Shown: positions 11,064 to 51,959 of the stretch, in pieces
How positions within the stretch are numbered: the first letter of the stretch is position 1
Layout: each line of letters opens with the position of its first letter
Virus record (IMG/VR): IMGVR_UViG_3300027668_000008
Span: 124,001-188,000 of that record
Strand: one strand, 5' to 3'
DNA: 64,000 nt
Made by a program: the position numbers and the translations under genes
Notes under the pieces: model-generated
The model's database searches: none
Told to the model about the DNA's origin: nothing
Seen by the model: only the letters and a program-made list of their open reading frames with translations

Positions 11064-11068
11064 ACTAG

Positions 11069-11074
11069 TATTTA
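11069..11074 (-). promoter_or_regulatory. TAAATA late-type promoter box directly upstream of the cyclase
   Basis: TAAATA 6 nt before the ATG; the same box recurs before many genes. Confidence 0.6.
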
Positions 11075-11094
11075 TTTAAAGGAAATTTGGGGTG

Positions 11095-19041: not shown

Positions 19042-19574
19042 CGGGTTATTCCAAAATGTTTAAAGGACTGCTGAACACACTTTGCTTGATAATAACAATC
19101 TGCCAAGGCGTTGTGAGCATCTGTTTGTATTGCTTTACGAGGATCTACAGGCATCATACTAAACAATGTTCTACTATCTCGCACTTGCCAGAAGTTCCAT
19201 GGAATAGGTTGTTTCATCTGTCTATATAAATTTTCTAATATAACCATATCGAATGCAGGACCTTGACACCAAATTTGATCACAGCCAATTAACCATTTGT
19301 TAAGTTGTGCTAATGTATCTGCAACACTTGTGCGATTTTCATCACCTAATGCTTCGTCTTGAATTTCTTTCTTTTGTTTGCCCCACCACTCGAGTGTTCC
19401 AGGATCCACACTACGATTCATAGTAGATTGTTCATCTACATCTAAACGTAAATATAAACCTTTTGCAGGTTCTTCATTATTATATGGATTAAATTTTATT
19501 CCACCCAGTGTAAGTACTGTGCAGTCTGGTTGAGTGCCTAGTGTTTCTAGGTCAATCATTGCGTGTGTTGACAT
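19038..19574 (-). CDS. DEDDh 3'-5' exonuclease (DexA/Rv2179c-like)
   Basis: MIDLETLG, WCQGPAFD, VRDSRT, HNALADC. Confidence 0.9.
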   Translation of the reverse strand: MSTHAMIDLETLGTQPDCTVLTLGGIKFNPYNNEEPAKGLYLRLDVDEQSTMNRSVDPGTLEWWGKQKKEIQDEALGDENRTSVADTLAQLNKWLIGCDQIWCQGPAFDMVILENLYRQMKQPIPWNFWQVRDSRTLFSMMPVDPRKAIQTDAHNALADCYYQAKCVQQSFKHFGITR

Positions 19575-24155: not shown

Positions 24156-24989
24156 TTAGGCCCTATCTTGCACACTTTTTAAATACTTTTCTAGCATTTT
24201 TCCCCAAGTATCGTCAAAATTGTCACTTATCTTCAGTTGTGCTTCTCTTATTAGTGTAGAATCGCACCCACAGTAGTTTATATTCGCCCCTATATGTTGT
24301 AAAAACGTACTGTAAAAGTTGTGCCCTATTAAGTAGGATTTGGCTTTTACTTCGTTTTCTGCATAAAATTTGTTGAATAATTCGATATGGTTTTTTATTG
24401 AATGTGCATTGTAATCTTTTATGAAATCAGATGTTAATCCTGCATACAACCAATCGTTAGTATGTAATAATCCGTGTTTTTCATTTTGTACACCTGTAAA
24501 AACGTATGCTTTATTGTTCCATGCACTTTGTACAAAGTCTTGCAAGAAGTTTGTATTTCTAATAGCACAATCCCAACGAGCATGGAGTACAACATCTGAT
24601 TTTGCTATGTTATCTCTGTGTAAAGAAAGTATGTTATTTAACATGAATAATCTACCAAAGTAGTAGTCAAATGTGACATTGTGACCTAGATGCGATTCGT
24701 TTGAATTGTTTAAGTACTGTTTTAAAACAGGCGAGCATAGGTACTCTTTTGTAAGTACTTGTTCCGGAGATGTTGTCATAACACTACCCCAAAGTGCTTT
24801 GCCTTTAGTATAGTTTTTATGTTTGGCGTTATCCGGTAACTTGTGTAGTTTCTTTATATCGTCTGAATAGTAAGTGTTACTATAAAACGTTACATTGTAT
24901 GTTGACTTGTCAACTAGATTTTGCCACCATTCTAAACAGAAGTCCAAATGTCTTGGATCTCCTGTTAGTATAATAGCAATGCTCTTCAT
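24156..24989 (-). CDS. Hypothetical glycosyltransferase-like protein
   Basis: IAIILTGDPR, DVVLHARWD, HTNDWLYAG. Confidence 0.5.
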   Translation of the reverse strand: MKSIAIILTGDPRHLDFCLEWWQNLVDKSTYNVTFYSNTYYSDDIKKLHKLPDNAKHKNYTKGKALWGSVMTTSPEQVLTKEYLCSPVLKQYLNNSNESHLGHNVTFDYYFGRLFMLNNILSLHRDNIAKSDVVLHARWDCAIRNTNFLQDFVQSAWNNKAYVFTGVQNEKHGLLHTNDWLYAGLTSDFIKDYNAHSIKNHIELFNKFYAENEVKAKSYLIGHNFYSTFLQHIGANINYCGCDSTLIREAQLKISDNFDDTWGKMLEKYLKSVQDRA

Positions 24990-25420
24990 TAAAGCACAAC
25001 TACGCCTTCTTTAAGTAATCTTTTACGATTCTTTTCATGTTGTTTAGCAACATCTTCTTTAGCACCGCCAAAGTACGCAACTGCGTGTCCTGATTTAATC
25101 ATAATCTCTGTGGCACGTTTATCGTCAATTAGGAAGTCACCTAATATTCTACCAAATTTACCTTTTGCATCTTCACCACTTCTGTCAATTTCAGTTTTAA
25201 GTACTGACGTTGATCCCAGTGGCAACATTTCTTTAAGTTTAGCCTTTGCCGCCAAGCCAAATTTCTTTTCAACTTTGTCTCTTGTTCTAGATTCTGGTGT
25301 ATCAATACCCATCATTCTAACACGTTCTTTTTTAAGCCAGACGCCAAAGCCTAAGTCAATATCTACATCAACTGTGTCGCCGTCTACTACTTTAATAATT
25401 TTGCATTTATATTCGTACAT
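24989..25420 (-). CDS. Thermonuclease (SNase-like)
   Basis: VVDGDTVDV, RVRMMGIDTPESRT, GKFGRILG, GHAVAYFGG. Confidence 0.92.
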   Translation of the reverse strand: MYEYKCKIIKVVDGDTVDVDIDLGFGVWLKKERVRMMGIDTPESRTRDKVEKKFGLAAKAKLKEMLPLGSTSVLKTEIDRSGEDAKGKFGRILGDFLIDDKRATEIMIKSGHAVAYFGGAKEDVAKQHEKNRKRLLKEGVVVL

Positions 25421-28640: not shown

Positions 28641-28898
28641 CTATCCTATTTTTGATCCACCTGTGCCATTATAGCCAGTGTTTTCGATGTATTCTAATAA
28701 TTGGTCGTATCCGCCGATTTTGTCTTTATATACTTTAATCTGCGGAAATGTTCTTGCTCCCGGAAACTCTTCCATTACATCTTCTCTTTGAAAGTCTGTT
28801 CCCAACTGTTTGTATACAAACTCGTATCCACGTTGCTCACATAATGCTTTTGCTTTTGTGCAACTTGGACAAGCAGGTTTGCCCCATATTTCTATCAT
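28641..28898 (-). CDS. nrdC: Glutaredoxin (NrdC-like)
   Basis: CPSC, ARTFPQI, IGGYDQL; follows nrdB. Confidence 0.93.
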   Translation of the reverse strand: MIEIWGKPACPSCTKAKALCEQRGYEFVYKQLGTDFQREDVMEEFPGARTFPQIKVYKDKIGGYDQLLEYIENTGYNGTGGSKIG

Positions 28899-30013
28899 AA
28901 ACTAAATCCCTTAAATGTATCTGTGTCAACGTCTTGTTTAGTACCGCCGGTTACATAAGAACTAATCTCTGTTTCTTGTGGTGCTACTTGTACTTCTGCT
29001 CCACTAATCCAATTTTGTGTCCAAGGTAACGGGTTACTTCCACCTTTATAAGGACTAGTCAATCCAACTGCTAACATACGTTTATGTGCAGTCCATTCAA
29101 CATAGTCTTTTAGTAATTGTGCATTAAGACCAATCATACTGCCATCTTTAAACAAATACTCGGCCCATGCACTTTCTTGTTCAACTGCTTCAACAAACAT
29201 CTTTTCACACTCTTCTTTTGTTTCTTCTGCAATCTTAATAAAGTCTTTATCATCTTTTGGAAGGATCTTTAACAATGCTTGTGTACTTGCCAAGTGTACG
29301 TTTTCATCACGGCAAATAAATTTGATAATTTTTGCATTGCCTTCCATTTTTTTAAGTTCTGCAAATGCCCAACTACAGGCAAAAGAAACATAAAAACGAA
29401 TTCCTTCTAATATGTTAACACTGTTAATTGCTAACCATAATTTTTTCTTTAGTTCATATAAGTCTACTTCAACTTTTTTACCATTAACTGTATGTGTTCC
29501 TTCACCCATTAGTTGGTATGCTAAACTTAACTGAATAAGATCATCATAGTTCTTACTAATGTCATCAGCACAATCTGTAATTTCTGAAATGTCCATCATC
29601 TCGTCAAAGATTTTACTTGGATCGCTATAGATATTACGGATAATATGTGTATAACTACGTGAGTGAATTGTTTCACTAAATGTCCAAGTTTGAACCCATG
29701 CTTCTAATTCAGGGATACTAATTAACGGACCAAATGCTTCAGTAGGTGCTCTACCTTGTACACTGTCTAGCAAGATTTGTCTTTTAAGATTACTTGTAAA
29801 GATGTGTTGTTCATGTGGTGTCAAATCTTTAAAATCTTTACTATCTTTACCAATGTCAACTTCTTCAGGTCTCCAAAAGAATCCTAGTTGTTTATCTGTA
29901 AACTTGTCAAATTGTCTATACTTAACGGCATCATACCTTTGTATATTAACACCGCCGTCTAAGAAGGCTTTGCTTTCAAGGTGATTTCGTTTCTCATTAC
30001 TGAATACTGTCAT
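28895..30013 (-). CDS. nrdB: Class Ia ribonucleotide reductase beta subunit
   Basis: FFWRPEEVD, ILLDSVQGR, ETIHSRSY, LEGIRFYVSF, RDENVH, VAPQETEISSY. Confidence 0.97.
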   Translation of the reverse strand: MTVFSNEKRNHLESKAFLDGGVNIQRYDAVKYRQFDKFTDKQLGFFWRPEEVDIGKDSKDFKDLTPHEQHIFTSNLKRQILLDSVQGRAPTEAFGPLISIPELEAWVQTWTFSETIHSRSYTHIIRNIYSDPSKIFDEMMDISEITDCADDISKNYDDLIQLSLAYQLMGEGTHTVNGKKVEVDLYELKKKLWLAINSVNILEGIRFYVSFACSWAFAELKKMEGNAKIIKFICRDENVHLASTQALLKILPKDDKDFIKIAEETKEECEKMFVEAVEQESAWAEYLFKDGSMIGLNAQLLKDYVEWTAHKRMLAVGLTSPYKGGSNPLPWTQNWISGAEVQVAPQETEISSYVTGGTKQDVDTDTFKGFSL

Positions 30014-30037
30014 TTTATTTTATCTCTCCGTATCTAT

Positions 30038-32356
30038 CTATATTGTGCAGGCTTCACAATAATCATCATACTCAGCATCGGTTTTAAATTCATCTCTGCC
30101 TAATAATTCTGCCTTATTAATGTTAAACTTATCAACATCAATTTCACCTTGTCCGTCATATGTATTAAAGTAGTAAAGTTGTTTACCACCATACTTATAG
30201 AACATAATTAAATGTTGTAACATCACACTCATTGGAATCTTTTCATCTTCGTAGTGTGTTGGATTATAACTGGTATTAACACTAATACCTTGATCAATAT
30301 ATTTTTGCATCACTGCCATAATCTTCAGATAACCCTCTGGAGATTTTTGATCCCATAACATTTCATACTTATTTTTAAGTCTTCGATATTCTGGTACAAC
30401 TTGCTTTAAAATACCATCTTTGCTTTGTTTAACACTTACAAATGCACGTGGTGGTTCAATTCCGTTGGTACTGTTACTTATCTGTGCTGACGTTTCTGCA
30501 GGCATAAGTGCCATCAAAGTACTGTTTCTGATACCTGTTTTTTGCAGTTGTTTACGCAAACTAGTCCATGCCATACGTTCTTTGTGTGGCACTAACTCGT
30601 CTACATCAGTCTTATATGTCATATTAGGCGTAATACCTGCACCATACTTTGTTTCGTCTATTCCTGGACAAGCACCTTGCTCTACTGCCAAATCCGCACT
30701 TGCTTTAATTAAGTAGTAACTCCATGCTTCTGCATATCTGTCAACTAACTCTAAGTTTGGATTTGTGTAAGTCATGTCATGTTTAGCCATCCAATATGCT
30801 AAATTAATAATACCAATACCTAAAGGACGTCTTTTGTTTGTGCTATTCTCTGCCGCTTTTACAGGATAATGTTGATACGTTAGTAACGCATCTAATCCAC
30901 GCACTGCAAGTCTGCATACACGTTCAAAGTCTGCAATGTCTTTAATGTTTCCCCAGTTGACTGCACTTAATGTACACAATGCAATTTCACCTTCTTCGTC
31001 ATTAAAGTCGTTAAGAGGTTTAGTTGGTAAGTTAATCTCACAACATAAATTACTTTGTTTAATTGGTGCTTTACTGGCAATGAATGAACTGTGGTCGTTT
31101 GCATGGTCTACATTCATTAAATAAATTCTACCTGTGTTTTTACGTTCTTCCATAAACGCACTAAACAAGTCACTAGCACGGATACTTTTCTTTCGAATTT
31201 TTGTATTACGTTCTGCACGTTCATAAAGTTCTTTAAACTTATCTTGATCTTTAAAAAATGATTCGTATAATCCAGGTACATCTTGAGGCGAGAAAAGAGT
31301 TATGTTGTCGTTTGTAAGTAAACGTTCATACATTAATTTGTTAAACTGAACTCCATAATCCATGTGCCTAACTCGATTTTCTTCTGTGCCTTTGTTATTT
31401 TTTAGCACAAGCATATCTTCAATTTCTAAATGCCATAAAGGATAATACAATGTTGCCGCTCCATTACGCACACCTCCTTGTGAACAAGAACGTGTTGCCG
31501 CTTGGAACATTTTATAAAAAGGTATAACACCTGTATGGTATGCGTCACCGTTACGAATAGGACTACCTAATGCACGAATACTTCCTGCACCAATACCAAT
31601 ACCTGCCTTTTGTGAAACATACTTAACAATAGCACTTGTTGTTGCATTAATACTGTCTAAACTATCGCCTGTTTCTACTAGTACACAACTACTAAACTGT
31701 CGTTGTGGAGTTCTAACTCCTGCCATTACTGGCGTAGGTAAACTAATGTCGAAAGTACTTGTAGCATCATAATACTCTTTAACATATTGCATTCTTGTTT
31801 CTTTTGGGTAGTTACTAAACAGTGTTGCCGCAATTAACATATATGCTACTTGTGGTGTTTCATATATTACTTTTGTTACACGATTTTGTACAAGATACTT
31901 ACCACGCCATTGTTCCATAGCCGCATAAGTCATGCTCTCGTCACGGTCGTGTTTTATGTATTTGTCAAAGTCATTAAATTCTTCTTCTGAATAAAGTTCT
32001 AAAATTTCTGCATCATAAAATCCTAGTTCAATATTCTTCTTTACAATATCTAAAATGTGTTTGGGTTTAAACGAATCATAAACCATTTTACGCAAATGGT
32101 AGTTAATAAGTCTACCTGCTACCCATTGATAATTAGGAGTGTCTTCGCTGATTAAATCAGCCGCACTCTTTATCATTGTTTCTTGTATTTCTGTTGAAGT
32201 GATTCCTGTATAAAAGGAAAGGTGGGATTTAATTTCTACTTCACTTGCACTTACACCTGTTATATTCTCACACGCATAAAATACTACTTTATGCATTTTT
32301 TCTAGGTCTAAGTCTTCTTTTGTTCCGTCTCTTTTCGTTACTTGAATTTGTGTCAT
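30038..32356 (-). CDS. nrdA: Class Ia ribonucleotide reductase alpha subunit with ATP cone
   Basis: VTKRDG ATP cone, QFSSCVL, SNLCCEI, ALMPAETSAQI, C-terminal CEAC. Confidence 0.98.
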   Translation of the reverse strand: MTQIQVTKRDGTKEDLDLEKMHKVVFYACENITGVSASEVEIKSHLSFYTGITSTEIQETMIKSAADLISEDTPNYQWVAGRLINYHLRKMVYDSFKPKHILDIVKKNIELGFYDAEILELYSEEEFNDFDKYIKHDRDESMTYAAMEQWRGKYLVQNRVTKVIYETPQVAYMLIAATLFSNYPKETRMQYVKEYYDATSTFDISLPTPVMAGVRTPQRQFSSCVLVETGDSLDSINATTSAIVKYVSQKAGIGIGAGSIRALGSPIRNGDAYHTGVIPFYKMFQAATRSCSQGGVRNGAATLYYPLWHLEIEDMLVLKNNKGTEENRVRHMDYGVQFNKLMYERLLTNDNITLFSPQDVPGLYESFFKDQDKFKELYERAERNTKIRKKSIRASDLFSAFMEERKNTGRIYLMNVDHANDHSSFIASKAPIKQSNLCCEINLPTKPLNDFNDEEGEIALCTLSAVNWGNIKDIADFERVCRLAVRGLDALLTYQHYPVKAAENSTNKRRPLGIGIINLAYWMAKHDMTYTNPNLELVDRYAEAWSYYLIKASADLAVEQGACPGIDETKYGAGITPNMTYKTDVDELVPHKERMAWTSLRKQLQKTGIRNSTLMALMPAETSAQISNSTNGIEPPRAFVSVKQSKDGILKQVVPEYRRLKNKYEMLWDQKSPEGYLKIMAVMQKYIDQGISVNTSYNPTHYEDEKIPMSVMLQHLIMFYKYGGKQLYYFNTYDGQGEIDVDKFNINKAELLGRDEFKTDAEYDDYCEACTI

Positions 32357-32822: not shown

Positions 32823-34388
32823 TTAAGAAAAATTAGTTATACGATATTTAAGTGTTGCGTCTGCACCTGTTGATGTTGTTGTGTACTGAACAGTACCATC
32901 AGAGGCTAATAGTGTTAATCCTGCACCTACGTCTGCATTTTCAGTGAAGGCTTGTTCAAAAGTATAACCAGCAGTATTACTACCAGCAACTTTCATAACA
33001 CCCATTCGTCTTGCATTACCACGTTCAATAACAAAGTCTATTTCTGCATTAATTAAAACACTTGAATCAAAGTCAATTGCAGTGCTCGTTACTGAAGTAG
33101 TGTTATCAACTAATGTAAAACTTTTTCCTGGCTCTTGAGTATGTAAACCATAAGTTAGTTTATCACCTGCAATTAAACCAAATACTGCTTTACCATTATT
33201 TTGTAGGTTTGGGTGTGTTGCCTGTTGTGATACAGTTCTGTCGAACCCATCACCGAGGCTAATATTGTTGTCTGCATCAAAGTCAATAATTGGACAAGTA
33301 GGTGTTCCACCACTAGCAATGTTTGCCACGCCACAAGTTGTAAATGTATTAAACGAACTCGTAAACTCTTGTACTGTTACAGTTTTGATTGCTTCTTTGT
33401 ATATAAGTTCAAACAAAGAATTTGTTACTTTAACACCACGTGGGCCTGATCCTGATCCAACTGCTGAAAGTAAAATACCTGCAAAGTTATCGTGTATGTA
33501 ACAATTATTTAATATTACATTTGTAGCATCGTTATTACTATATAATCCAACATCTAATTTTGCAAAGTCACAGTTTTCAAATTTAACATTTTTAGTATCT
33601 GTTGAAGCAGTTTGTGTAATAATTACACCTGCTTTACCGTTGCTTAATGATGATGGATTAGTAACGTGTCTTCCTTTAAATCTAACGTTAGTAAACGTTA
33701 CCATGTTTGCTTGGTCAACTAAAAAGTTGTGATCATCTTGTGTATGATAAAATTGTATATTCGAAATGTTTATGTTTTTAGGTTTTAATGCTCCACCTAT
33801 TCCAACATTGGCTCCTACTTGTTGCTTACTATCAGAAGTTTCGCCAACATATCCTGAAACAGATGTTCTTTTAAGTATAGTAGCACCTGGACCGTCACCA
33901 ACAATGTTTGCATTCCTAGGAAACTTAATTGAATCAGATACAAGATACACGCCTGCAGGAAAGTAAACTGTTTTTAATGTTTCTTTGTTTGTTGCTTCAC
34001 GTGAATAAATTTGATTTAACATAAAGTTAATTTTAGCAGTATGATCCGTGACACCGTCTCCTTCAATGCCAAAATCTTTAGCATTAATGAAGTCATCTAA
34101 TTTGTTTTGGAGAGAACGTTGTATACTAGCACCACTTGATGTAGTTTGTGCAGTATATCCTACTTCAGCGCCTTTATATGTATAACTGTTAATACTTCCT
34201 AATATATCACTATATTGTGTTAATATTTCTGTATTACCAATAGCCGGTGCACCCTCTGATGTGGTTCCGTTACCAATGTATAATTTACGTTCGTCAATCA
34301 CCCAGCCAATTTCTGCACTTGACAGTTGTGGCAAGTCAGCGTTCAGACCCCTGCGATGTTGAATTTTTGATATTTGAATTACTGCCAT
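32823..34388 (-). CDS. Virion fibre/spike protein with pectate-lyase-like beta-helix
   Basis: N-terminal QHRRG..LPQLSSAEIGW..LYIGNG; AKDFGIEGDGVTDHT, VYFPAGVY; TATAAATA at 34406-34413. Confidence 0.8.
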   Translation of the reverse strand: MAVIQISKIQHRRGLNADLPQLSSAEIGWVIDERKLYIGNGTTSEGAPAIGNTEILTQYSDILGSINSYTYKGAEVGYTAQTTSSGASIQRSLQNKLDDFINAKDFGIEGDGVTDHTAKINFMLNQIYSREATNKETLKTVYFPAGVYLVSDSIKFPRNANIVGDGPGATILKRTSVSGYVGETSDSKQQVGANVGIGGALKPKNINISNIQFYHTQDDHNFLVDQANMVTFTNVRFKGRHVTNPSSLSNGKAGVIITQTASTDTKNVKFENCDFAKLDVGLYSNNDATNVILNNCYIHDNFAGILLSAVGSGSGPRGVKVTNSLFELIYKEAIKTVTVQEFTSSFNTFTTCGVANIASGGTPTCPIIDFDADNNISLGDGFDRTVSQQATHPNLQNNGKAVFGLIAGDKLTYGLHTQEPGKSFTLVDNTTSVTSTAIDFDSSVLINAEIDFVIERGNARRMGVMKVAGSNTAGYTFEQAFTENADVGAGLTLLASDGTVQYTTTSTGADATLKYRITNFS

Positions 34389-39683: not shown

Positions 39684-40940
39684 TTATTTGCTCCAAGTTT
39701 TAGTTGCTGAGAAATTCAATGCATTGAATTCCATTCTATCATTTAGTTTAACTGCTCCACCGTCTATACCAAATGCTACAAATCCTTCATGGTTTGTAAC
39801 TCTGTATCCATTTTCAGTTTTTACAAATGTTCCAATTTTATCTACATTACTTAATTTACTAATTAATAATAGTTTAGCACTAATTATACGACGATACACT
39901 GCTAGTGTCAAGAGCAACGTATTACTATTGTCTGCTAAAAATTTCTTTTGTTGTTCAATTTTTTCAAAACGTTTTTGTGCCGCTGGACTTTCAGCGCCGC
40001 CTTTTAATTTTTCAACTTCTTTATTCATCTTATCATTATAATAATTCATAAAGTCTTGTAGGAACTTTGTCGGTTCACCGACTTGTTCCCCTGCTCTTAC
40101 ATTATTATTAATAAAAGGTTTAATAAACTTTGCAAATTCAGCCTGTAGTACTTGATCCATTTTAGGACCTACTTTTTTAAGTGTAGTACGCCCTGTTGCA
40201 ATAGTACCGTCTATAGCCTTTTCTTCGCTAGGTGTTAGTGTTGCAATACCGGATACATCTTTATAATTTGCGTCATCATACCATACATCTGCTGTAGGTT
40301 GTAAACCTCTAACACTGTAACCAAAATTTGCAGTCATTTCTGGTAGTGTAGCACCTGTATATTCTGTATGAAATACTATTCCGATTTTTGCTTTAGCGAC
40401 ACGTTTGCCAATAGCACTATCCACAGGAACTGCGTATGTAATAGTGTTAGGGGTAAACGTATAACAGTTGTCATCACCAACGTCTTCTGTTTTAACATCA
40501 CCTGGGCCAAAAAGGAAGTCGCCTTGTACAACTGATCCTATGCCTAATTTAGGTAATAGTTTAAACGCCATTAATAATTTTGCTTCTAGTGAAGGTTGCT
40601 CGGAATACCATTCTTTAATTTGTGCTACTGATTTAGCAACTTTAGGTGTCTTTGCATTAAACACTGATTTAGTGCCTACAAAGAATTTACTATCTTCTGG
40701 ATCTATTCCGCAAATAATTGCCGGGGCACCATCCCACTTAACAGTAACTTTACCTTCTGGTTGTCCGCCTTCTAATAAACCTTTAACTGCATCTAGATAA
40801 TTAAATGCTCTTTGGGCACCTGCGTAACCTTCATTAAAGATTAAGTCTTCAATATGTTCTAAGTGTGTGTTTTTACCTTCTGCTTCGTTAAGAATATTCC
40901 AGTAATGTGTTTTAGGTTCAAAAATTTCTTTTATAATCAT
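39684..40940 (-). CDS. ATP-dependent ligase-superfamily nucleotidyltransferase (RNA-ligase-like)
   Basis: KWDG (motif I), VGTKS (Ia), VQGDFLF (III), HEGFV (IV), AVKL (V). Confidence 0.6.
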   Translation of the reverse strand: MIIKEIFEPKTHYWNILNEAEGKNTHLEHIEDLIFNEGYAGAQRAFNYLDAVKGLLEGGQPEGKVTVKWDGAPAIICGIDPEDSKFFVGTKSVFNAKTPKVAKSVAQIKEWYSEQPSLEAKLLMAFKLLPKLGIGSVVQGDFLFGPGDVKTEDVGDDNCYTFTPNTITYAVPVDSAIGKRVAKAKIGIVFHTEYTGATLPEMTANFGYSVRGLQPTADVWYDDANYKDVSGIATLTPSEEKAIDGTIATGRTTLKKVGPKMDQVLQAEFAKFIKPFINNNVRAGEQVGEPTKFLQDFMNYYNDKMNKEVEKLKGGAESPAAQKRFEKIEQQKKFLADNSNTLLLTLAVYRRIISAKLLLISKLSNVDKIGTFVKTENGYRVTNHEGFVAFGIDGGAVKLNDRMEFNALNFSATKTWSK

Positions 40941-42074: not shown

Positions 42075-42857
42075 ATGAACTATGATTCACACCATGCAAT
42101 GCTTTCTGCCTGTGCATACACGGATCTAAACCCATCTATTGAAGCAACTTTTAGTAAAATAGGGTATAAAACCATCCATTTTTTGAATACCGATGGGGCT
42201 CAAGCATATTTGTTGAGCAATGATGACCTTATTACGATTGCTTTTAGAGGTACTGAACCTAGTCAACCTAGCGATCTTATTGCTGATGCCAAAAGTTGGA
42301 AAAGTAAGAGTAAAGTTGCAGGTAAAGTACATGATGGATTTTATGATGAAATTGAAAAGATTTGGGATGAAATTGAAGAATTTGCAAATAACAACCCAAA
42401 AAAACAAATGACTATTACCGGTCACAGTTTAGGTGCCGCGATGGCAACACTCTGTGCCGCAAGGTTACAAGATAAGTTTGAGGATTTAGCATTATATACA
42501 TATGGTTCGCCACGTGTTGGTAATAAAGAATTCATAAACAGTTGTAAATTTAAACACTATCGTTGGGTTAATAACAATGATGCGGTAACTAGAGTTCCAC
42601 CTGCGTTTATTGGTTTTAGACATCACGGTCAAATGAAATATTTAAACCATTTTGGCAATATTAGAAACGGGTTAAGTACATGGCAACGTTTCAAAGACAG
42701 GATACGAGGAAGAATTTCTGCTTGGAAAAAGTGGCAATTATTTGATGGTGCATATGATCACAGTATTAGTGATTACCATAGAAAAATTAATAAAGCACAT
42801 TTATCTAAAACAAAAGATGGTAAAGTGATACTAGACCAATTTAAACCTAAAGACTAA
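42075..42857 (+). CDS. Lipase class 3
   Basis: IAFRGTE, VHDGFY, ITGHSLGAAMA, YGSPRVGN, NNDAVTRVPP, DHSISDY; AGGAG RBS; TAAATA at 42032. Confidence 0.92.
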   Translation: MNYDSHHAMLSACAYTDLNPSIEATFSKIGYKTIHFLNTDGAQAYLLSNDDLITIAFRGTEPSQPSDLIADAKSWKSKSKVAGKVHDGFYDEIEKIWDEIEEFANNNPKKQMTITGHSLGAAMATLCAARLQDKFEDLALYTYGSPRVGNKEFINSCKFKHYRWVNNNDAVTRVPPAFIGFRHHGQMKYLNHFGNIRNGLSTWQRFKDRIRGRISAWKKWQLFDGAYDHSISDYHRKINKAHLSKTKDGKVILDQFKPKD

Positions 42858-44251
42858 GTCTTTAAATTTTTAAGCATATCATTCAGTTTATTAGACTGTA
42901 CTTCGGCTCGGACAATCTTTTCTGGTTGTTCGGCTGATTGGTTCCCTACATTAGATTGTGCTTTAATTTTATTCATCACATCTGTACTAATAGTAGAAGA
43001 AGCCGATGCAGAATCACTATCAGATTCATCACAATCTCTAATACGCAAACTATTGTTATCAAATTCTAAGTCTACTTTTTGCCCTACTCCACTACTACTT
43101 CTAGTTTTCATAAATTGTATTTGATATCTTCCACGTTCTCTCATTGCCCTACTAGTAAATATACCAATAACGTTATCAGCAGTATTAATTTTACTAATAC
43201 CACCAGCGATATGAGAATGGTCAAATTCAATTTCTTCAACTGCCGCTCTGTTTAACTGCGAAGCAGTTACCATAATAAAGTCCATTTCTTTTGCCAAGTT
43301 ACGCAATTCTTCACTTACATATTTGTCTTTAATAAACTGATCATTTGGACTAACTTTTGCACTAACAGGCATTAACAAGTCTAAGTAATCAACACAAATA
43401 TAATCTAGTTTTTTACCTATTTTAACTTGTAATTCTTTTATGTATGACCTAATATCGTTAATGTTACTTTGTGCTGGCATATACTTAATACGCAAACTTC
43501 CTGCTTTTTTACCAGCCATGCCAATTTTCATTTCAAGTGTATCTAAATCTTTAAAGACATCTTTAGTTGGAATTTCGGAAACCATACTGTCTAAACGCAT
43601 AGCACACAATCCTTCACTTAACTCTAATGTTAAGTATACACCATTAAGTCCTGCCATTGTCCAGTTAACTGCAAGATTTTGCATAAACAAACTCTTACCA
43701 GATCCACTACCACCTGCAAAGATGTTTAGTTCGCCTCTGTTAAATCCACCAAATAATTTCTTATCTAAGTTTGCCCAGCCAGTACTTACTTGACCATTGC
43801 CGTCTTTAAGAGCCATAAGTCTTGCTCTAGGATCTTCCCAATACTCGATACCTAAGTCTTTTGTTAAACTTATTTGTACTGCATCTTTAATTAGTTTCTC
43901 TACAGGATCATACTCGCCTTTTTCAAGTAAGTCTGCACTTTTTAAAATAGCACGTTCTAATTCGTTACGTCTAGTAAATGCTTCAAACTCAGACATAAAC
44001 CAATCATAATGACCTTCGGTTAATTCTTTTACTGGTTTAAGTTTACTTCCAGTAGCCGCATTAATCTGGTCTGCCGTAGGCATAGTGCTATATTCAGAAG
44101 TATGCTTTTCGATAAACTTTGCCGGTTCTCTTAAACTTTTATCAAAGTTTTCTGCGTTAAAAATATTTTGTACTCTAACGTAAGACTCTGCATCGTTGAG
44201 CATCATCTCTAAGAATAGTCTTTGTAAGTCTATTGTATATTCAGTTGCCAA
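42854..44251 (-). CDS. Replicative DnaB-like helicase (gp41-like)
   Basis: AGGSGSGKS, TLELSE, CVDYLDL, TASQLNR, IQFMKTRSS. Confidence 0.95.
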   Translation of the reverse strand: MATEYTIDLQRLFLEMMLNDAESYVRVQNIFNAENFDKSLREPAKFIEKHTSEYSTMPTADQINAATGSKLKPVKELTEGHYDWFMSEFEAFTRRNELERAILKSADLLEKGEYDPVEKLIKDAVQISLTKDLGIEYWEDPRARLMALKDGNGQVSTGWANLDKKLFGGFNRGELNIFAGGSGSGKSLFMQNLAVNWTMAGLNGVYLTLELSEGLCAMRLDSMVSEIPTKDVFKDLDTLEMKIGMAGKKAGSLRIKYMPAQSNINDIRSYIKELQVKIGKKLDYICVDYLDLLMPVSAKVSPNDQFIKDKYVSEELRNLAKEMDFIMVTASQLNRAAVEEIEFDHSHIAGGISKINTADNVIGIFTSRAMRERGRYQIQFMKTRSSSGVGQKVDLEFDNNSLRIRDCDESDSDSASASSTISTDVMNKIKAQSNVGNQSAEQPEKIVRAEVQSNKLNDMLKNLKT

Positions 44252-45248
44252 GTTTTTTCCTCATAAGTTCGATTTTAATTTTACTAGTTTGTGCAGTGTT
44301 TATAATGCTCCACAATGTATACAGTTTACCATATGTATCTATTGCATCACTTACATCCTTAACATCTGCGTCCCAGTCTGGAAAGGCTACACTCCAACCA
44401 TATTCGATTGCAGTGTCAATTACTTTACTTCCTGCATTGTCCTGGTCTGGTACTACTATAACATCTTTTCCTAAAGAGTCAAGTAAATCCGCTTGGGTAT
44501 CGTTAATCATATTACTGTTTATTCCAACACCACCAATCTTTAGTGCATCTATTGGGCCTTCCATAACTAATACAATCTTTCTATCTTTTTGTTGTTCATC
44601 AACATTAAACACATACCCTGGTTGCATATAATTCATATACTTAGGTTGTATGTTATTGTTAATCGATCTTCCTGTATGACCAACACATTTATTCTTGTAA
44701 TAAAACGGAATAATTAATCGTTGATTCAAGTTTCCTGCTCTACTAGGTGACCATCTCAATGTGTCAAGTTTAGATTCAAGTCCTCTAGTTATGGCATACT
44801 CTGCCACCGCTGAAATTTGTTCTTCGTGATCGCCTGGATTATGTATCCAATGCATAAGTGTTTGTGATCCATCTGGGAAGTCTTTTTCTTCAAAAGTAAT
44901 TTCTTCTACTACTTCGACTTCACCTATTTCTTCTGCATACTCTTTTAATCGTAATGCTTCAATTTGCAAACCTTTTATTTGCTTATCGTCAGCACCAAAC
45001 CATTGAAATAACTTTCTTACTTTATATGTAAGATGATATCCAGGTTTCCAATGTGCTTTATAGCCACAGTTAAAACAATGGTAACTTAAAACTCCGTCAC
45101 CACCGGCTATACCTGCTCTGCCTCGTTTGTCTTGTGACTCTCCATTGTGAGTACAACACGCACCATTAAAAGATATCCAACCACTTGGGCTAGTCTTCTT
45201 TTTAGAAGGCAGTAAAGCGATAAATGTATTATAGATTATATTTTGCAT
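44241..45248 (-). CDS. DNA primase (gp61-like; Zn finger plus TOPRIM)
   Basis: CC..H..CFNC Zn site, VMEGPIDA, VPDQDNAG, KDVSDA. Confidence 0.9.
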   Translation of the reverse strand: MQNIIYNTFIALLPSKKKTSPSGWISFNGACCTHNGESQDKRGRAGIAGGDGVLSYHCFNCGYKAHWKPGYHLTYKVRKLFQWFGADDKQIKGLQIEALRLKEYAEEIGEVEVVEEITFEEKDFPDGSQTLMHWIHNPGDHEEQISAVAEYAITRGLESKLDTLRWSPSRAGNLNQRLIIPFYYKNKCVGHTGRSINNNIQPKYMNYMQPGYVFNVDEQQKDRKIVLVMEGPIDALKIGGVGINSNMINDTQADLLDSLGKDVIVVPDQDNAGSKVIDTAIEYGWSVAFPDWDADVKDVSDAIDTYGKLYTLWSIINTAQTSKIKIELMRKKLGN

Positions 45249-46099: not shown

Positions 46100-46474
46100 A
46101 TGGACGAGTTACTAGAAAAATTACTTAATCAATACCCATTTTTAAGCCATATTAGTTATGGGCAAAAAGAGTATATCGGGATAATTCAAAACCGAGACTC
46201 TCATTGCACTAGTTTTTATGACTACGAAAAAGTTCAAGACATAGAGCTAAAAAGGCACTATCTGTCATTAGCCGAAACTTGGTGGTGGGAATCAAATAGA
46301 ATGATTCCAATCAACATATTCCTTAAACAAGATTGGGTCTGCTTTAGACCTTACCTAACAACTTTTGTTAGTAAGGACTGTAATGTACTTGCAGGACCAC
46401 AAGTTAGTCTTAGTGAATTGTCTAAAAAGCGTACTAAAAGACGCTCTATTCAATTGGTCAAAAAAGTAAACTAA
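46100..46474 (+). CDS. Conserved hypothetical protein
   Basis: 124-aa ORF, convergent with the ferredoxin. Confidence 0.75.
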
Positions 46475-46830
46475 ACTTCCTCACCAGGATTTTCACTTAA
46501 AAATTCTGTCTTATCACCTATGTCCGGATTCAGTTTTGGATTATTAGCATCTGCATCATCCATTTCATCAATTTTTTCAGTAATGACAGGCCATAGTTCA
46601 GACATTCTAGTATTAATGTCTAACCATTTTTCTCGCTCTTCTGGTTCAAAGTCTGTATCTGCTCTAATAGCACCTGCTGGACATTCCGGTTCACACACTC
46701 CACAATCAATACATTCATCTGGATTAATTGCTATTGAATTCTCTCCTATGTAGAAACAATCTACTGGGCATACTGATACGCAATCTGTATACCTACATTT
46801 AATACATTTATCGTCTACTAGATATGTCAC
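46471..46830 (-). CDS. fdxA: 7Fe ferredoxin (FdxA type)
   Basis: [18 protein letters not shown] and [13 protein letters not shown]-terminal W..IN...S..WP. Confidence 0.93.
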
Positions 46831-47408
46831 TTATACTCCTCGCATAATAAGTTTATATGAACTGCTACTAAATGAGCATACGCAACTGCGTGAGCTTTTT
46901 TAAAATAGTAAGCACTGCCCTCAGGTTTGTTCCAAACACTTTCCGAAACTTCCTTCCAAGTCTTACCTTGTAAGTTTGCTTTACCGGGTCTTATAATGCT
47001 TAACAACATTGCCATTCTAGGTATGCTATCGGGTTTCATTTTTTTGATTAAATCGTGATAGTTTCCTATATGAATAACTTGCTCACAAAATTCTTTACTT
47101 TTCCAAAGCAATTCCCATAAAGGTTCTTGCTTTATTAATTTATCTAAATGTGCTTCATCTTTTACTTTTTGATACACTGCTACATTAAGTAAATCTAATT
47201 TAAAATATCCTCTATCTTCTGCAATCTTATAATCTAACGTACTCATGTTAGTTGCTGGATCTACAGGTATCTGTGTATAATAAACACCAGTGTTATGTTT
47301 CTTAACAACCCCGTGTTCGTTCATAGAAGCCGCTATAGCAGGCAAGGCACTTAATACTTGTTCTCTGTCTGCAAAGTCTATATCGACGTCTGGTAATCTA
47401 TGACTCAT
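46827..47408 (-). CDS. Miniature family C (DnaE-like) polymerase catalytic core
   Basis: [35 protein letters not shown] in order within 193 aa. Confidence 0.85.
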
Positions 47409-48139
47409 AATTTTGCTTCTTTTAATGCATCTTTAACTATTGCAGTTTCTGTATGAAACTTTACAAAGTTCTTACGCCAATAATCAGGATCAATATATTC
47501 ATAAATTATTCCTAATTGTTCTTGGCTTAATTTTCCTAAGAATGCAACGCCTGAATCACAGTTAAATATAATCCACGGACTTAGTCTGCCATTTACAATA
47601 TGGCTACAAATTTTGTTTGGATTTGCCGCAAAGAAATAAGTGTGTAAATGTACACCATGTTCTTTCATATGGGATTCCATTGTTTTTAAACTTCTTGTAA
47701 TAGCATCTTGCCATGTTTCAGTTCTTAAATGTGTTTCTAAATATTCCTGATAATACTTGTCATGTGTCCATTGGTCTAATTTAATATTGTTCTTAACAAC
47801 AAACTTAATAAATGCACTAGTGTTAATACAAGAAATACTAACCATATGCTTACCAAACTTTACAAATGCATTATAATACTGACTGTTAACAAAGTCGCCA
47901 TATGACTTCTTAGCCGCATCGCCTCCTTGAGTCATTTCATAAAAACGTAAGTATGCTTGTAAGCCTAACTGTACACCTTTGTCACCTTCTTGTTGCCATC
48001 TGCGTTTTTGTTCGCATACATGGGTAGTTAAAGTTTTTTCTCTACTAAACCCTCGTTCACAATATTTACATATAAACGCCTTTGTTGGCGGTTTGTAATT
48101 TTCTTTAGTTTGTTTTGCTATAGCCATTAAGTTGATCAC
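47405..48139 (-). CDS. Zn-finger-containing conserved hypothetical protein
   Basis: CKYCERGFSREKTLTTHVC (C2HC-type). Confidence 0.7.
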   Translation of the reverse strand: MINLMAIAKQTKENYKPPTKAFICKYCERGFSREKTLTTHVCEQKRRWQQEGDKGVQLGLQAYLRFYEMTQGGDAAKKSYGDFVNSQYYNAFVKFGKHMVSISCINTSAFIKFVVKNNIKLDQWTHDKYYQEYLETHLRTETWQDAITRSLKTMESHMKEHGVHLHTYFFAANPNKICSHIVNGRLSPWIIFNCDSGVAFLGKLSQEQLGIIYEYIDPDYWRKNFVKFHTETAIVKDALKEAKL

Positions 48140-48660
48140 AATTTCAAATTCTTTTCATGGTATTGAATAATACTTTTATCCCACTCTGGGAATACAGTTC
48201 GGTTAACGTAAATATCATTATAGTCGAATCTTTGTAGATTGTCAATCTTTTTTGCTACTTTATCAACAATCGCATTGTATTCATCTAAATGACGTTGCTT
48301 AACCGTCTTCTTGCCTGCGGAGCCGTATATTTTCTTTAAACGTAAATCCATAACATACTGTAGTGTTTGTAAATCGCTTATTGTTATTGCCCATGCTTGT
48401 TCACATTTAAAATTGTAGTTATCTAAATAAAAGTCACTTGGGTTATGAGCACTTATCATGTTTGCACCTTCGACACTATGTATGTCATTCATTGTGTCAA
48501 TTTGTGCTACACTAGGTAAAGGTGTGCTATCATATAAATTATTATGTATTTCACATGGTACATTTTCAATATCTTTCCAAGTATATAGACTCTGCAGGAA
48601 GTTGCCGCCTGAACCTGGTCGCCAAAGGAGAAATAATTTACAATTTATTGTCGGGGTCAT
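48136..48660 (-). CDS. Sulfotransferase-like P-loop protein
   Basis: LWRPGSGGNF motif, shared with 63319-63999. Confidence 0.4.
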   Translation of the reverse strand: MTPTINCKLFLLWRPGSGGNFLQSLYTWKDIENVPCEIHNNLYDSTPLPSVAQIDTMNDIHSVEGANMISAHNPSDFYLDNYNFKCEQAWAITISDLQTLQYVMDLRLKKIYGSAGKKTVKQRHLDEYNAIVDKVAKKIDNLQRFDYNDIYVNRTVFPEWDKSIIQYHEKNLKL

Positions 48661-49124
48661 AGCATCTCTTTTATTTGTTTGTCATCATATCCTAAATCTA
48701 TCAAATGTGCTTTCACATCTTTCTTTGTATTCAAACTTGCTAGTAATTCTAGCTCATCTTCTTTTGCTGAAGGATATAAAACTTTTAGTGTTTTCAATAT
48801 CTTGTTATTTACTGCATTCTTCTTTTTACCGCCTGCAATCCATTCGTGATATGCAGTACCCAATCCCGGACTTGCAGTTGTCATTAATAACCATTGCAGT
48901 TTAGGATGTTTTGTTAAATCAAAGAAGTTTGTATTAACACGTTTATTAGTTGCAATAAGCCACCACTCTTGTAATGCAGACTCGCCTTTCACACTACTAG
49001 CATATCTGTTCATAAGAAACGGACTAAAAGCCTTCTTTTCCTCGTCGCTTAAGGTATCAAAGAAGCCCTTGTGCTTACGATCCATTGCTCCGAGTACTTT
49101 GTTAAGTGGTAGTTTGTTTGCCAT
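48657..49124 (-). CDS. Clamp-loader small-subunit-like protein (gp62-like)
   Basis: FSPFLMNRYAS, HPKLQWLL, LYPSAKEDELELL; replication context. Confidence 0.55.
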   Translation of the reverse strand: MANKLPLNKVLGAMDRKHKGFFDTLSDEEKKAFSPFLMNRYASSVKGESALQEWWLIATNKRVNTNFFDLTKHPKLQWLLMTTASPGLGTAYHEWIAGGKKKNAVNNKILKTLKVLYPSAKEDELELLASLNTKKDVKAHLIDLGYDDKQIKEML

Positions 49125-49142: not shown

Positions 49143-49415
49143 TTATAAATATTCTGCAAATGTTATTTCAAATAAATTTGCATCATCGATACTTTCAAAT
49201 TTGATGTAGTACCATCTGTTGTTATCTTTGCCCCAATCGATCCGTATAGTTACACCCTTATTTACTAATTGTCTGTCATTAAAAAAGTTTATAACATTCT
49301 CTATTAAAGACCTCTGTACATTGATCCAATACTCTTCGTTTTCTGCGTTAAGTTTTAAATCATATTCGTGCGAGTTTTGTTTAACAATCAACTTACCAAA
49401 CTTGGGAGACATCAA
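49143..49415 (-). CDS. Small hypothetical protein
   Basis: 90-aa ORF. Confidence 0.6.
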   Translation of the reverse strand: MMSPKFGKLIVKQNSHEYDLKLNAENEEYWINVQRSLIENVINFFNDRQLVNKGVTIRIDWGKDNNRWYYIKFESIDDANLFEITFAEYL

Positions 49416-49893
49416 CTACTTCCGACGTTCTGCTAATTTCTTCAACAAAGTACACGCAAGGTGGATTCTCGCCCTCACACAAAGGTACTGCTAATAAATG
49501 CCCAGGTTTAAGTTTAGGGAAATACCATTTAACTTCCTGATACACATCTACTATTTCTACTGGATAAAACTCAGGTCTAAAATCACCACGTGGATTAAAC
49601 GTAAATGCATTAAACCCTCTATCGTTTAAACTTGTTAACGGAACAACTTCTAAGTCGCCTACTTCTGCTTCACCAATTAATAGTTGCCAATCACGTGGCA
49701 TTCTAATTGTATACTCTCCGATTCTTAATACTAATGCCGGAGCATTAAAACTTTGTAGGAAAATAAGTGGAATAAAGTAATAATCAGGATCTTTAGGATT
49801 ACTGTTGTCTAAAACGGCAAACCTTAAATCATCTACTTCTTCAGGCAAGTCGTTCATTACAAAAGTTTTATTTTCTAATGTAAGAATTTGCAT
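49393..49893 (-). CDS. Conserved beta-rich protein, Hint-like fold candidate
   Basis: ILTLE at the N-terminus, IRMPRDWQLL, VEIVDVYQEVKWYFP. Confidence 0.45.
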   Translation of the reverse strand: MQILTLENKTFVMNDLPEEVDDLRFAVLDNSNPKDPDYYFIPLIFLQSFNAPALVLRIGEYTIRMPRDWQLLIGEAEVGDLEVVPLTSLNDRGFNAFTFNPRGDFRPEFYPVEIVDVYQEVKWYFPKLKPGHLLAVPLCEGENPPCVYFVEEISRTSEVVDVSQVW

Positions 49894-49894
49894 A

Positions 49895-50503
49895 TTAATA
49901 TAACTCCTTAATTTTGTCTGCTATACCAAATTTGACTGCTTCTTTGGCTGATAACCAAATGTCCTGTGGTGGTAACAATACTTCTCTGATTTTCTTTTCA
50001 GATAATCCAGTACATTTTTTATAATGTTGCATCATACGTTCGCTTGATAGTTCAAACTCTCTAACACGGGCAAATAACTCATGTTCTTTACCTGTTGAAC
50101 CCCAACTGTATTGATGTGATAAAATACTTGTATTAGGCGTAATGATACGTTTGCCTTTTGCTCCACTCATAAATGTAAGTATACCACAACTTGCAATAAG
50201 TCCTAGTCCTACGGTTTTGATTGGAATACCACTTGCCTTCATTGTATCAATTAAAGCAAATGCACTATGCACATCACCGCCTGGACTATTAATAATAAGT
50301 GTTAGCTCTTTAGGGCGTTCAGTATCCGGTGCCAAGTTCTTTTCAATAATCCACTGAATTACTGGCTTTGTAGTTTCAGTTGTAAATGGATCTGCAAAGT
50401 AATAAACACCTGCCTCCCACATAAGTATTCCAGGTGGTTTAGGTTGCACTGTAGGTTTTCCTTGTTTAACGTTTTTCATTATTTGATTCTCCATATTATT
50501 CAT
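49895..50503 (-). CDS. clpP: ClpP-family protease
   Basis: INSPGGDV, GLIASCG (Ser), ILSHQY (His), DIWLSAKEAVKFGIAD. Confidence 0.92.
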   Translation of the reverse strand: MNNMENQIMKNVKQGKPTVQPKPPGILMWEAGVYYFADPFTTETTKPVIQWIIEKNLAPDTERPKELTLIINSPGGDVHSAFALIDTMKASGIPIKTVGLGLIASCGILTFMSGAKGKRIITPNTSILSHQYSWGSTGKEHELFARVREFELSSERMMQHYKKCTGLSEKKIREVLLPPQDIWLSAKEAVKFGIADKIKELY

Positions 50504-51959
50504 TCCAATCTGTCTTTTTTACAACAAATGGATAATTTGCTTCTTTATAGAAGTTTTTTCGTTTAGTTAAATGTCGCTTGGCATATTTACAAGTACTTGT
50601 AATATCCCATATTTTAACAAAATCTTTATCACTTGCTTTACGAATACCACGTCCAATACTTTGTATTACTCTTACAAAACTTTTTCCTGGTTCGATTAAT
50701 ACAAGGTTAAATATCCTTGGTATATTAATACCTACTGCCGCAACACCATATGTTGCTACAATAATCTTATTGTCAACGTCTGCAATCTCGTCATAGTGTG
50801 CTTTTCTGTCACTTGTTTTAGTGGCACCACTTACAAATACTGCTTTGTCTCCAAGTCTGCTTACTAGTTCTTTACCCGATTCTACTCTGTCTACTAATAC
50901 AAGAGTATTGCCATCTTGCCCTATTGTACCGAGCAGTTTAGCAAGATAATCCAATCTTTTTGCGTTTGTTAGCAAATACTTTAATTCACTTTGATAGTTT
51001 CCATAATCTCCATGGTCAATTAATTGCAATACATTAACTTCACAGTTAGCAAGTACACCCTGTTCTTGTAATTCACTTGCAGTTTTTCTACCAACTACTT
51101 CTCCTAAACTTACCATAATACTCATAAATTCAAAATCTTCTTTTGGCACTGTTCCTGTTAGTCCCCAACGAATTGGTATTTGACTCATAGGTCCTGTTAA
51201 CAATGTTTTCAATGCATCCGCTTTTGCCATATGCACTTCATCTACCATAACACAAACTACACCTGCAATAAATTCTTGTATAGTAATAGGTGCAACTGCG
51301 TTCTTTGTATTCTTTAAAAGAATGTTTAGACTTTGCCAAGTACAAATAGTATGCTTGTGTCCAAACTCTTTTCGGTCTCCGTAAAACACACCAACGTCTA
51401 GTCCCATGTTGACATAGTCTTCTTCTGTTTGTGTTACTAGCGACTTATTTGGCACTATTACAATGCTTCTACCGTACTGTTCGACTTTACTACTTAATGC
51501 GGCAGTTATTAATGTCTTACCTGCACCAGTGGCAATCTCCTGCATACTTTGTGGATTCTTTAAGAAATTATTAATAATCTCTACTTGGTAATCACGCAAT
51601 ACAATTGGTTCGCCTACAAGTTGATGACCTTTGGGCCACATCACATCATTAAATGCAGTTTCGTCAATTTCATCAAAATCAAATCTTGTTTGATAATCTC
51701 GTTGATCATCTAGTTCAATTTGATATTTCATTTCTTCTAACACAGGAATAATCTTTGGAAGAAGATTAATGTATGTGCTACCACCTAACTGAAAGTATGC
51801 AACTTTTCCGTCCCACCGTCCTAAACGAACTGCTGGAAGATATCGTGCATAAGGAACTTCGTACTTAAACATATTAGACAATCGACGCCTAGCGTCTAGT
51901 TCTAACCCTTTTATAGAAACGTTTACTTCGTCTCTAATCAATAATTTTGCTTGTGGCAT
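50496..51959 (-). CDS. uvsW: SF2 helicase (UvsW-like)
   Basis: LRDYQ, ATGAGKT, DEVH, GLTGT, QSIGRGIR. Confidence 0.9.
   Translation of the reverse strand: MPQAKLLIRDEVNVSIKGLELDARRRLSNMFKYEVPYARYLPAVRLGRWDGKVAYFQLGGSTYINLLPKIIPVLEEMKYQIELDDQRDYQTRFDFDEIDETAFNDVMWPKGHQLVGEPIVLRDYQVEIINNFLKNPQSMQEIATGAGKTLITAALSSKVEQYGRSIVIVPNKSLVTQTEEDYVNMGLDVGVFYGDRKEFGHKHTICTWQSLNILLKNTKNAVAPITIQEFIAGVVCVMVDEVHMAKADALKTLLTGPMSQIPIRWGLTGTVPKEDFEFMSIMVSLGEVVGRKTASELQEQGVLANCEVNVLQLIDHGDYGNYQSELKYLLTNAKRLDYLAKLLGTIGQDGNTLVLVDRVESGKELVSRLGDKAVFVSGATKTSDRKAHYDEIADVDNKIIVATYGVAAVGINIPRIFNLVLIEPGKSFVRVIQSIGRGIRKASDKDFVKIWDITSTCKYAKRHLTKRKNFYKEANYPFVVKKTDWNE

Follow-up and report, generated by a model that had tools for sequence, protein, structure and literature searches.

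A probable two-polypeptide minimal family C DNA polymerase in an uncultured marine jumbo phage

Described split polymerases and the marine copy

Bacteria copy their chromosomes with family C DNA polymerases, the known examples of which are large enzymes of a single chain. A split minimal form of the alpha subunit of DNA polymerase III (Pol III alpha) was described in group 2.2 jumbo phages, by computer analysis, by Iyer, Anantharaman, Krishnan, Burroughs, and Aravind (Viruses 2021; PMC7824862), who proposed that it may cooperate with a family B enzyme in one-strand synthesis or repair and who also noted full-length dnaE in some other phages. We found no experimental work, either biochemical or genetic, on any split mini Pol III member in the literature searched. 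Here, we analyzed 64,000 nucleotides of the IMG/VR virus record IMGVR_UViG_3300027668_000008 (positions 124,001 to 188,000 of the record; this whole stretch is referred to as the window) and, within it, a 193-amino-acid open reading frame (ORF) with an ATG start at 46827..47408 on the minus strand, which we call the C piece. In our assessment, this ORF likely encodes one half, the C-terminal one, of a minimal family C DNA polymerase that consists of two polypeptides and is typical of the T4-like jumbo phages of group 2.2. A preliminary description of the ORF, made from the sequence alone, implied that it was new; the split system had already been described by Iyer et al. (PMC7824862), and this copy is a further marine member.

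As in that system (phrog_11778 for the C piece and phrog_11127 for its counterpart, the N piece), an N-terminal nucleoside triphosphate (NTP)-binding piece and a C-terminal Mg- and template-binding piece are encoded by distant genes, and the phage group and the gene neighborhoods are the same. The marine copy differs from the cultured split Pol III phages in the distance between the pieces, which is 76.7 kb here versus 34 kb in the RaK2/BF group and 44 kb in PA5oct-like phages, in its uncultured marine host genome, and in the ferredoxin gene that directly follows the C piece.

Compared with the structures of DnaE (E. coli 2HNH and 5FKV; Thermus aquaticus 2HPI, 3E0D, and 4IQJ; Mycobacterium tuberculosis DnaE1 5LEW and 7PU7) and PolC (3F2B), the split enzyme shares the Pol-beta-like palm, the equivalents of D401, D403, D555, and K553, the RPG motif, and the H760-type fingers helix. 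In contrast to DnaE and PolC, its active site is distributed over two polypeptides with a total of about 360 amino acids versus about 1,160, and the full palm (GS motif plus three carboxylates) occurs in one chain only in three rare fused clusters. An active site formed by two distantly encoded proteins of that combined size would make this the smallest known family C catalytic core. The cyanobacterial split DnaE (Npu and Ssp) likewise derives a family C catalytic subunit from two distant genes; however, its intein halves (~100 amino acids on the N side and ~35 on the C side) trans-splice to give full-length DnaE, whereas the jumbo-phage pieces carry no intein, are broken at a different point, and could assemble only noncovalently. 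The chimalliviruses, or group 1 jumbo phages, also encode polymerase subunits separately (PMC7824862; bioRxiv 10.64898/2026.09.30.755723), but that split polymerase has an unrelated fold (RNA recognition motif-type palm, family B), serves as the main replicase, and is not informative on family C.

The two halves of the proposed polymerase

The motifs of the C piece follow the order in which they stand in DnaE, as the preliminary description had it: LPDVDIDF at residues 5-12 (PDVDID at 6-11), KKHNTG at 36-41 (KKH at 36-38), FKLD at 69-72 (KLD at 70-72), IRPGK at 139-143 (RPG at 140-142), and FKKAHAVAY at 169-177. They comprise the Mg-binding DxD strand with D7 and D9 (also D11), the third carboxylate D72 after K70, the residues R140 and P141, and a fingers helix, FKKxHxxxY, which carries H173. 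In the alignments, the catalytic D401, D403, and D555 of E. coli DnaE have D7, D9, and D72 as their counterparts, K553 has K70, and residues 756-764 have the helix at 169-177, which places H173 opposite H760. The latter residue is a modeled steric gate against ribonucleotides in Pol III alpha and was reported to be invariant (PMC8485763). The earlier claim that all catalytic motifs are retained was correct for the three carboxylates and the fingers helix but not for the NTP-binding GS motif of the palm (R362-G363-S364 in E. coli), which is absent from the C piece and is carried by a separate 170-amino-acid protein.

The C piece spans approximately residues 399 to ~770 of E. coli DnaE and includes nothing past ~770. 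Within this range, the thumb (DnaE 433-510) has shrunk to a hairpin or short loop, with ~16 residues in the region matched to 433-508, and DnaE 643-739 is represented by ~10 residues, so that ~100 residues of the fingers are deleted; the secondary structure of the AlphaFold model agreed with the reduced thumb and fingers. The PHP, beta-clamp-binding, HhH, OB, and tau-binding domains are absent from the C piece, as are the full thumb and full fingers, and PF02811 (PHP) matched neither the N piece nor the fusion protein presented below. Most of these absences had been noted before, and both the Pfam scan of the C piece, which gave no match at E values up to 1, and the bounds of the DnaE alignment bear them out.

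Several comparisons linked the C piece to DnaE. In the PHROGs database, it belonged to phrog_11778, "DNA polymerase" (E of 1.5e-61; residues 7-190 on profile positions 8-193 of 197). Searches of the PDB sequences with the single sequence and with a 28-sequence profile gave weak but strictly colinear matches to the E. coli and M. tuberculosis Pol III alpha, covering DnaE segments 399-415, 509-560, 596-642, and 741-767, with E values from 0.06 to 1.8; the hhalign E value was 3e-4 over the central 103 columns. An AlphaFold model built from a 35-sequence alignment had a mean predicted local distance difference test score (pLDDT) of 87, and when it was compared with the PDB by Foldseek, which was a check suggested by the preliminary description, the top nine matches were all Pol III alpha, with probabilities up to 0.99, followed by a tenth match at an E value of 1.8. 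As judged from sequence and model together, the C piece is homologous to family C polymerases, and the match exceeds chance because its segments are colinear, the top Foldseek hits consist entirely of Pol III alpha, and a single PF07733 match extends across the junction of a natural fusion. The C piece is a family C remnant consisting of the catalytic part of the palm and part of the fingers.

The fusion protein, P0163 (375 amino acids), shows C-piece homology at residues 189-372, preceded by a 188-residue region with LVIGVGRGSSSASLLLFLLKIHLIDPIKYKLNIKEF. The element GVGRGSSSAS stands upstream of the DxD in this fusion, and the upstream element is the counterpart of the E. coli DnaE segment directly before PDFDVDF. 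The Pol III alpha NTPase domain PF07733 crossed the junction as a single match (residues 97-207, E of 4.8e-16). Among proteins of that size, only three fused clusters were found (P0163, P0390, and P0391), all of one lineage; they are metagenome proteins of 375-376 amino acids, 78-100% identical to one another, on contigs of 2.4-5.9 kb. The AlphaFold model of P0163 had a pLDDT of 89.7 and a predicted template modeling score (pTM) of 0.87, with only the linker 183-185 below 50, and the alignment behind it (A5) misplaces the first ~12 residues of the C pieces. Compared with the PDB, the model gave 16 significant matches, all of them to DnaE or PolC (E of 6e-8 to 6e-4), with a template modeling (TM) score of about 0.5 over about 350 columns, and nothing else below an E value of 4.

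With residues 1-190 of P0163 as the query, we recovered a gene of ~170 amino acids in 92 phage records, the same set of phages that carries the C piece. This gene, the N piece, is often annotated as "DNA polymerase III alpha," and its family has at least 7,998 members of ~172 amino acids, nearly all with a precomputed PF07733 match. In the profile alignment, the N pieces correspond to DnaE 320-392 and the C profile begins at DnaE 399, which puts the split point at DnaE 393-398, between the helix after the GS loop and the DxD-bearing strand. The last residues of the N piece (...YDLDVGEFLR) reach the position of DnaE 392, and the C piece starts four residues before the equivalent of DnaE 399 (395-399). 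A split intein at the break was ruled out because neither piece has extra residues there.

In the source genome, the N piece is a 170-amino-acid protein encoded outside the window on contig Ga0209383_1000010 (L192:11996-12508), on the same strand as the C piece. It contains MGLGRGSSVSS and matched PF07733 (E of 2.1e-8; 34.5 bits against a cutoff of 23.9) and phrog_11127, "DNA polymerase" (E of 8e-40). We reached it by walking left, in four steps, along metagenome contigs carrying exactly the proteins of the window. The contig Ga0209383_1000010 (jgi 3300027672; 173,703 bp) is 100% identical to window positions 1-11358 and runs on through DNA ligase and MazG, in the order seen in PAC2, to the N piece, which is located 76.7 kb downstream of the C piece and ~29.8-30.4 kb outside the window, counted from window position 1. 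The remainder of the window is spanned by Ga0209816_1000012 (170 kb) with 99.99% identity. In another sample, a 309-kb scaffold that also has the N-piece locus is about 98% identical to the region of the leftward walk. The source is an uncultured marine jumbo phage with a genome of about 300 kb. The PA5oct-like phage PAC2 and the window are colinear, with PAC2 125 to 158 kb matching the window from 59 to 19 kb, and genes resembling gp41, gp61, UvsW, UvsX, and UvsY, together with a gp44-like clamp loader, a sheath protein, and a terminase, were found in or beside the window.

The window itself contains no N piece, as judged in all six frames with a GRGS-type regular expression and with hidden Markov models from 4, 5, and 80 N pieces; none of the genes flanking the N piece in PAC2 was found in it either, and a walk over the 20 kb to its right met structural genes only and no N piece. 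A six-frame phmmer search of the window with E. coli DnaE revealed neither an N piece nor DnaE-like remnants flanking the C piece. The second-best match of that search, the ORF at 24989-25420 (minus strand), was a false lead and is a thermonuclease-type endonuclease (phrog_452).

Both halves belong to widespread families, and PHROGs and many GenBank records label both as DNA polymerase. A word-indexed search, limited to similar lengths, returned 7,470 homologues of the C piece, essentially all of 185-200 amino acids, and HMMER without a length restriction found 534 C-piece clusters (50% identity) among 1.84 billion cluster representatives; in the best 150 of these, the maximum length was 233 amino acids, with the 375-amino-acid protein as the sole exception. 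In the phage collection, the C piece was present in 96 records, all of them jumbo phages of 285-490 kb or fragments thereof. The nearest cultured relatives were PA5oct-like Pseudomonas phages, at 50% identity, followed by Phosso, Atu_ph07, RaK2, the 121Q group, and others; the orthologues annotated in PA5oct-like, Phosso, Atu_ph07, and RaK2 phages were 40-50% identical to the C piece. An identical C protein was seen in 54 sample blocks. In alignments of 28 and 35 members, D7, D9, D11, H38, K70, D72, R140, and P141 were invariant, as were F169, K170, K171, H173, and Y177; the preliminary description had regarded loss of the catalytic aspartates as evidence against its reading, and D7, D9, and D72 were conserved throughout. 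The ratio of nonsynonymous to synonymous substitutions (dN/dS) of the C piece was 0.08-0.12 against relatives at 85%, 74%, and 73% identity. The view that the ORF is not a truncated relic thus held up in the proposed comparison of dN/dS and length, with ~7,470 homologues of ~190 amino acids throughout the family and invariant catalytic residues.

Proposed enzyme and competing explanations

Together, the two halves hold the aligned active-site elements of family C: the GS loop, the three carboxylates, the equivalent of K553, and the fingers helix with the steric-gate histidine. The C piece supplies the strand with D7 and D9, the strand with D72 (after K70), and a shortened fingers module with H173, and the N piece supplies the helix-GRGSS-helix element (DnaE 320-392) that binds the triphosphate of the incoming nucleotide. 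In the proposed mechanism, the two would associate noncovalently and rebuild one Pol-beta-like active site, and the assembled enzyme would be a DNA-templated polymerase selective for deoxynucleoside triphosphates (dNTPs). On its own, it would be expected to act distributively, to lack proofreading, and to rely on other factors because it has no thumb, no PHP domain or epsilon proofreading, and no clamp-binding or OB domains. The zinc-finger protein encoded next to the C piece would be the first candidate for a DNA-binding helper. The enzyme would probably serve as an auxiliary polymerase in repair, gap filling, primer extension, or synthesis of one strand beside the main replicase.

Several points weigh against this reading. 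The case for an association of the halves consists of fold complementarity and the rare fusion, from which we infer it, and loss of the thumb and half of the fingers may preclude normal primer-template binding. The N and C genes were adjacent in 0 of 160 loci, which is unusual for obligate partners. The search for PolB or other DnaE pieces that had been suggested earlier was successful for the N piece, 76.7 kb away, but PolB was not located in the window and its flanks (~114 kb of genome examined) or at 90-182 kb of PAC2, and because of this the auxiliary role draws on the survey of Iyer et al. (PMC7824862) rather than on the present genome. Finally, metatranscriptome mapping yielded a single perfect contig of 156 nucleotides (marine run X2) inside the C piece, at window positions 47168-47318; this RNA-library contig is weak evidence of expression, given that DNA carry-over is possible, and too sparse to claim transcription. 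The remaining RNA-library contigs in the 4-kb stretch represented neighboring genes or a conserved ferredoxin motif of other organisms.

Other explanations were weighed against the same evidence. The preliminary description also offered the 193-residue protein alone as a complete minimal family C polymerase or a template-independent nucleotidyltransferase, and its three carboxylates and fingers helix are indeed present and invariant, in a chain that is predicted to fold as a compact unit (AlphaFold pLDDT of 87). However, every Pol-beta-like nucleotidyltransferase holds the triphosphate with a helix-GS-helix element, and the C piece, which begins at DnaE 399, is without it; this element is encoded separately in this genome and in the 92 cultured phage records (versus 96 for the C piece), and the natural fusion links N and then C in DnaE order. 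The conserved steric-gate histidine and the template-facing fingers helix speak further against a template-independent transferase. We consider a self-contained enzyme very improbable, and of the three options offered in that description, a split replicase subunit was the right one, as the separate N piece and the natural fusion indicate. Slightly less improbable, though still with little in its favor, is the explanation that the pieces polymerize no DNA and instead regulate the host replisome, serve as a decoy for it, or make a signaling or other nucleotide product. Such products are made by many small nucleotidyltransferases of the Pol-beta fold, proteins for host takeover are numerous in jumbo phages, the pieces lack the thumb and the DNA-binding C-terminal domains, and their polymerase activity is a prediction. 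Against a decoy, the DnaE regions that contact epsilon, beta, and tau (the PHP, beta-binding, and C-terminal domains) are precisely those missing, and against any nonpolymerase function, the catalytic and dNTP-sugar-sensing residues are invariant across thousands of sequences and both genes lie in replication modules, the C gene by the primase and helicase and the N gene by the clamp loader.

That the C piece is a decaying fragment of a former full-length phage dnaE is scarcely credible. It accounts for only about 17% of DnaE by length, and full-length dnaE is found in some other phages (Iyer et al.; PMC7824862), but a length of ~190 amino acids has been kept over ~7,470 proteins and 534 clusters at 50% identity, dN/dS is 0.08-0.12, the start and stop are coupled to the flanking genes, synteny is conserved, and the window holds no DnaE-like remnants beside the C piece in any frame.

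A further version of the split-polymerase reading, in which the thumb, DNA-binding, and proofreading modules that DnaE has and the two pieces lack are supplied by separately encoded phage proteins in a modular multisubunit family C polymerase, seems rather unlikely to us. The candidates for such modules are the zinc-finger neighbor, a 175-amino-acid protein encoded after the N piece, and, in some marine lineages, an Rv2179c-like DEDD 3'-5' exonuclease. Neighbors were counted in IMG/VR at the best 80 of more than 500 loci each for the N and C pieces, with flanks of ±3 kb. The 175-amino-acid ORF followed the N piece at 79 of the 80 N loci and Cpn10 was present at 77, while the C piece was found at none of them and the N piece at 0 of the 80 C loci; the two sets of best 80 loci had no contig name in common. 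In the source genome, the N piece is followed by this ORF (L192:12540-13064, outside the window; a partial match to phrog_14844), Cpn10, and the gp44-like clamp loader, in the order seen in PAC2 and Serratia phage BF, and the 175-amino-acid protein is a possible further subunit. The exonuclease lay 1-3 kb downstream of the N piece at 19 of the 80 N loci, which hints at a proofreading partner; here, its gene (19038-19574, minus strand; PF16473, E of 2e-39) is about 49 kb from the N piece. If the multisubunit version is true, the enzyme would be a second polymerase of the replisome, next to PolB, and a living model of how the bacterial replicase was put together from parts.

The mini Pol III is widespread: thousands of its sequences come from viromes, marine and other, and nearly 100 records of cultured jumbo phages contain it. 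It could give a very small engineerable polymerase scaffold and, as Iyer et al. (PMC7824862) suggested, could shed light on how the bacterial replicase originated.

Gene neighborhood and other features of the window

The C piece is coupled to other genes at both ends, as previously described. An ATGA overlap joins the stop of the zinc-finger ORF (47405-47407) to the start of the C piece (47406-47408), and a GTGA overlap joins the stop of the C piece to the GTG start of the ferredoxin ORF (46471..46830). The gene stands in a conserved block with the order uvsW, phrog_11279, phrog_11758, zinc-finger gene (phrog_11058), C piece, convergent ORF (phrog_11637), putative virion protein, primase, and helicase. 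This block is common to PAC2, Phosso, Atu_ph07, and RaK2, and its synteny is kept from Pseudomonas, Klebsiella, Agrobacterium, and Sinorhizobium phages to marine metagenomes.

The zinc-finger protein (47405..48139, minus strand; 244 amino acids) matched phrog_11058 (E of 8e-57), with weak zf-C2H2 matches in Pfam, and has one N-terminal C2HC/C2H2-type finger, with C24, C27, H40, and C42 invariant, and a phage-specific C-terminal domain; ESM Atlas returned only phage-specific unnamed clusters for it. Its gene is upstream of the C piece at 79 of the 80 C loci, abutting it in 34, and also occurs in PA5oct-like, Phosso, Atu_ph07, and RaK2 phages. The preliminary description had named this ORF as a possible partner in a split replicase, but as a missing DnaE domain it had to be rejected, with an hhalign probability of 0.4% against DnaE and zinc fingers as its only PDB matches, and the real other half lies outside the window. 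Given its position at nearly all C loci, an accessory role is possible, and the protein is a candidate accessory or DNA-binding factor that is translationally coupled to the C piece.

Other members of the block were similarly conserved. The convergent 124-amino-acid ORF (46100..46474, plus strand; phrog_11637, E of 8e-36) lies downstream of the C piece, on the other strand, in 4 of 4 cultured phages checked and at 73 of the 80 C loci. Upstream, on the minus strand, a 155-amino-acid ORF (48657..49124; phrog_11758) was present at 77 of the 80 C loci and in cultured relatives, and a 166-amino-acid ORF (49393..49893; phrog_11279, E of 7e-52), which comes after uvsW in relatives, was found in PAC2, Atu_ph07, and RaK2 and at 50 of the 80 C loci, where the 3-kb flank restricts the count. 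The UvsW-like helicase (50496..51959, minus strand) marks the upstream end of the block and is 50-52% identical to UvsW of PAC2, Atu_ph07, and RaK2. At the downstream end are the gp61-like primase (44241-45248) and the DnaB/gp41-like helicase (42854-44251), both on the minus strand, which are 34-52% identical to the annotated proteins of PAC2, Phosso, Atu_ph07, and RaK2, with their order kept. A ClpP protease gene (49895-50503, minus strand) is inserted between uvsW and the conserved ORFs; in PAC2, ClpP is encoded elsewhere, at 165.7-166.3 kb.

The ferredoxin gene that follows the C piece (46471..46830, minus strand) encodes a 7Fe-type protein with Fer4_7 and DUF3470 matches in Pfam. It is a lineage-specific, recent insertion into the replication block and no part of the polymerase, since only 5 of the 80 C loci have it; none of the cultured relatives carries it. 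Outside the window, the same contig (L184/L192) also has Fe-S assembly genes, a 2Fe-2S ferredoxin-like gene, and a radical SAM gene.

The remaining annotated genes of the window are all on the minus strand. They encode a UvdE endonuclease (330-1358) and a GMP reductase/IMPDH-like enzyme (17189-18328), and, in a list kept in coordinate order (28895-32356, 32823-34388, and 39684-40940), the alpha and beta subunits of a class Ia ribonucleotide reductase, a pectate-lyase-like protein with an Mtd_N domain, which is a tail fiber candidate, and a DUF6267 protein. At 8238-15355 on the same strand, the phage carries a gene run that resembles a curli or secretion and signaling set and comprises CsgG (14282-15355; PF03783, E of 1e-49), a FecR-like protein (12509-13600), a protein with a curlin-repeat match (11095-12549), a protein with CHASE2 and guanylate/adenylate cyclase domains (9030-11063), and an Asp/Arg hydroxylase (8238-8927).

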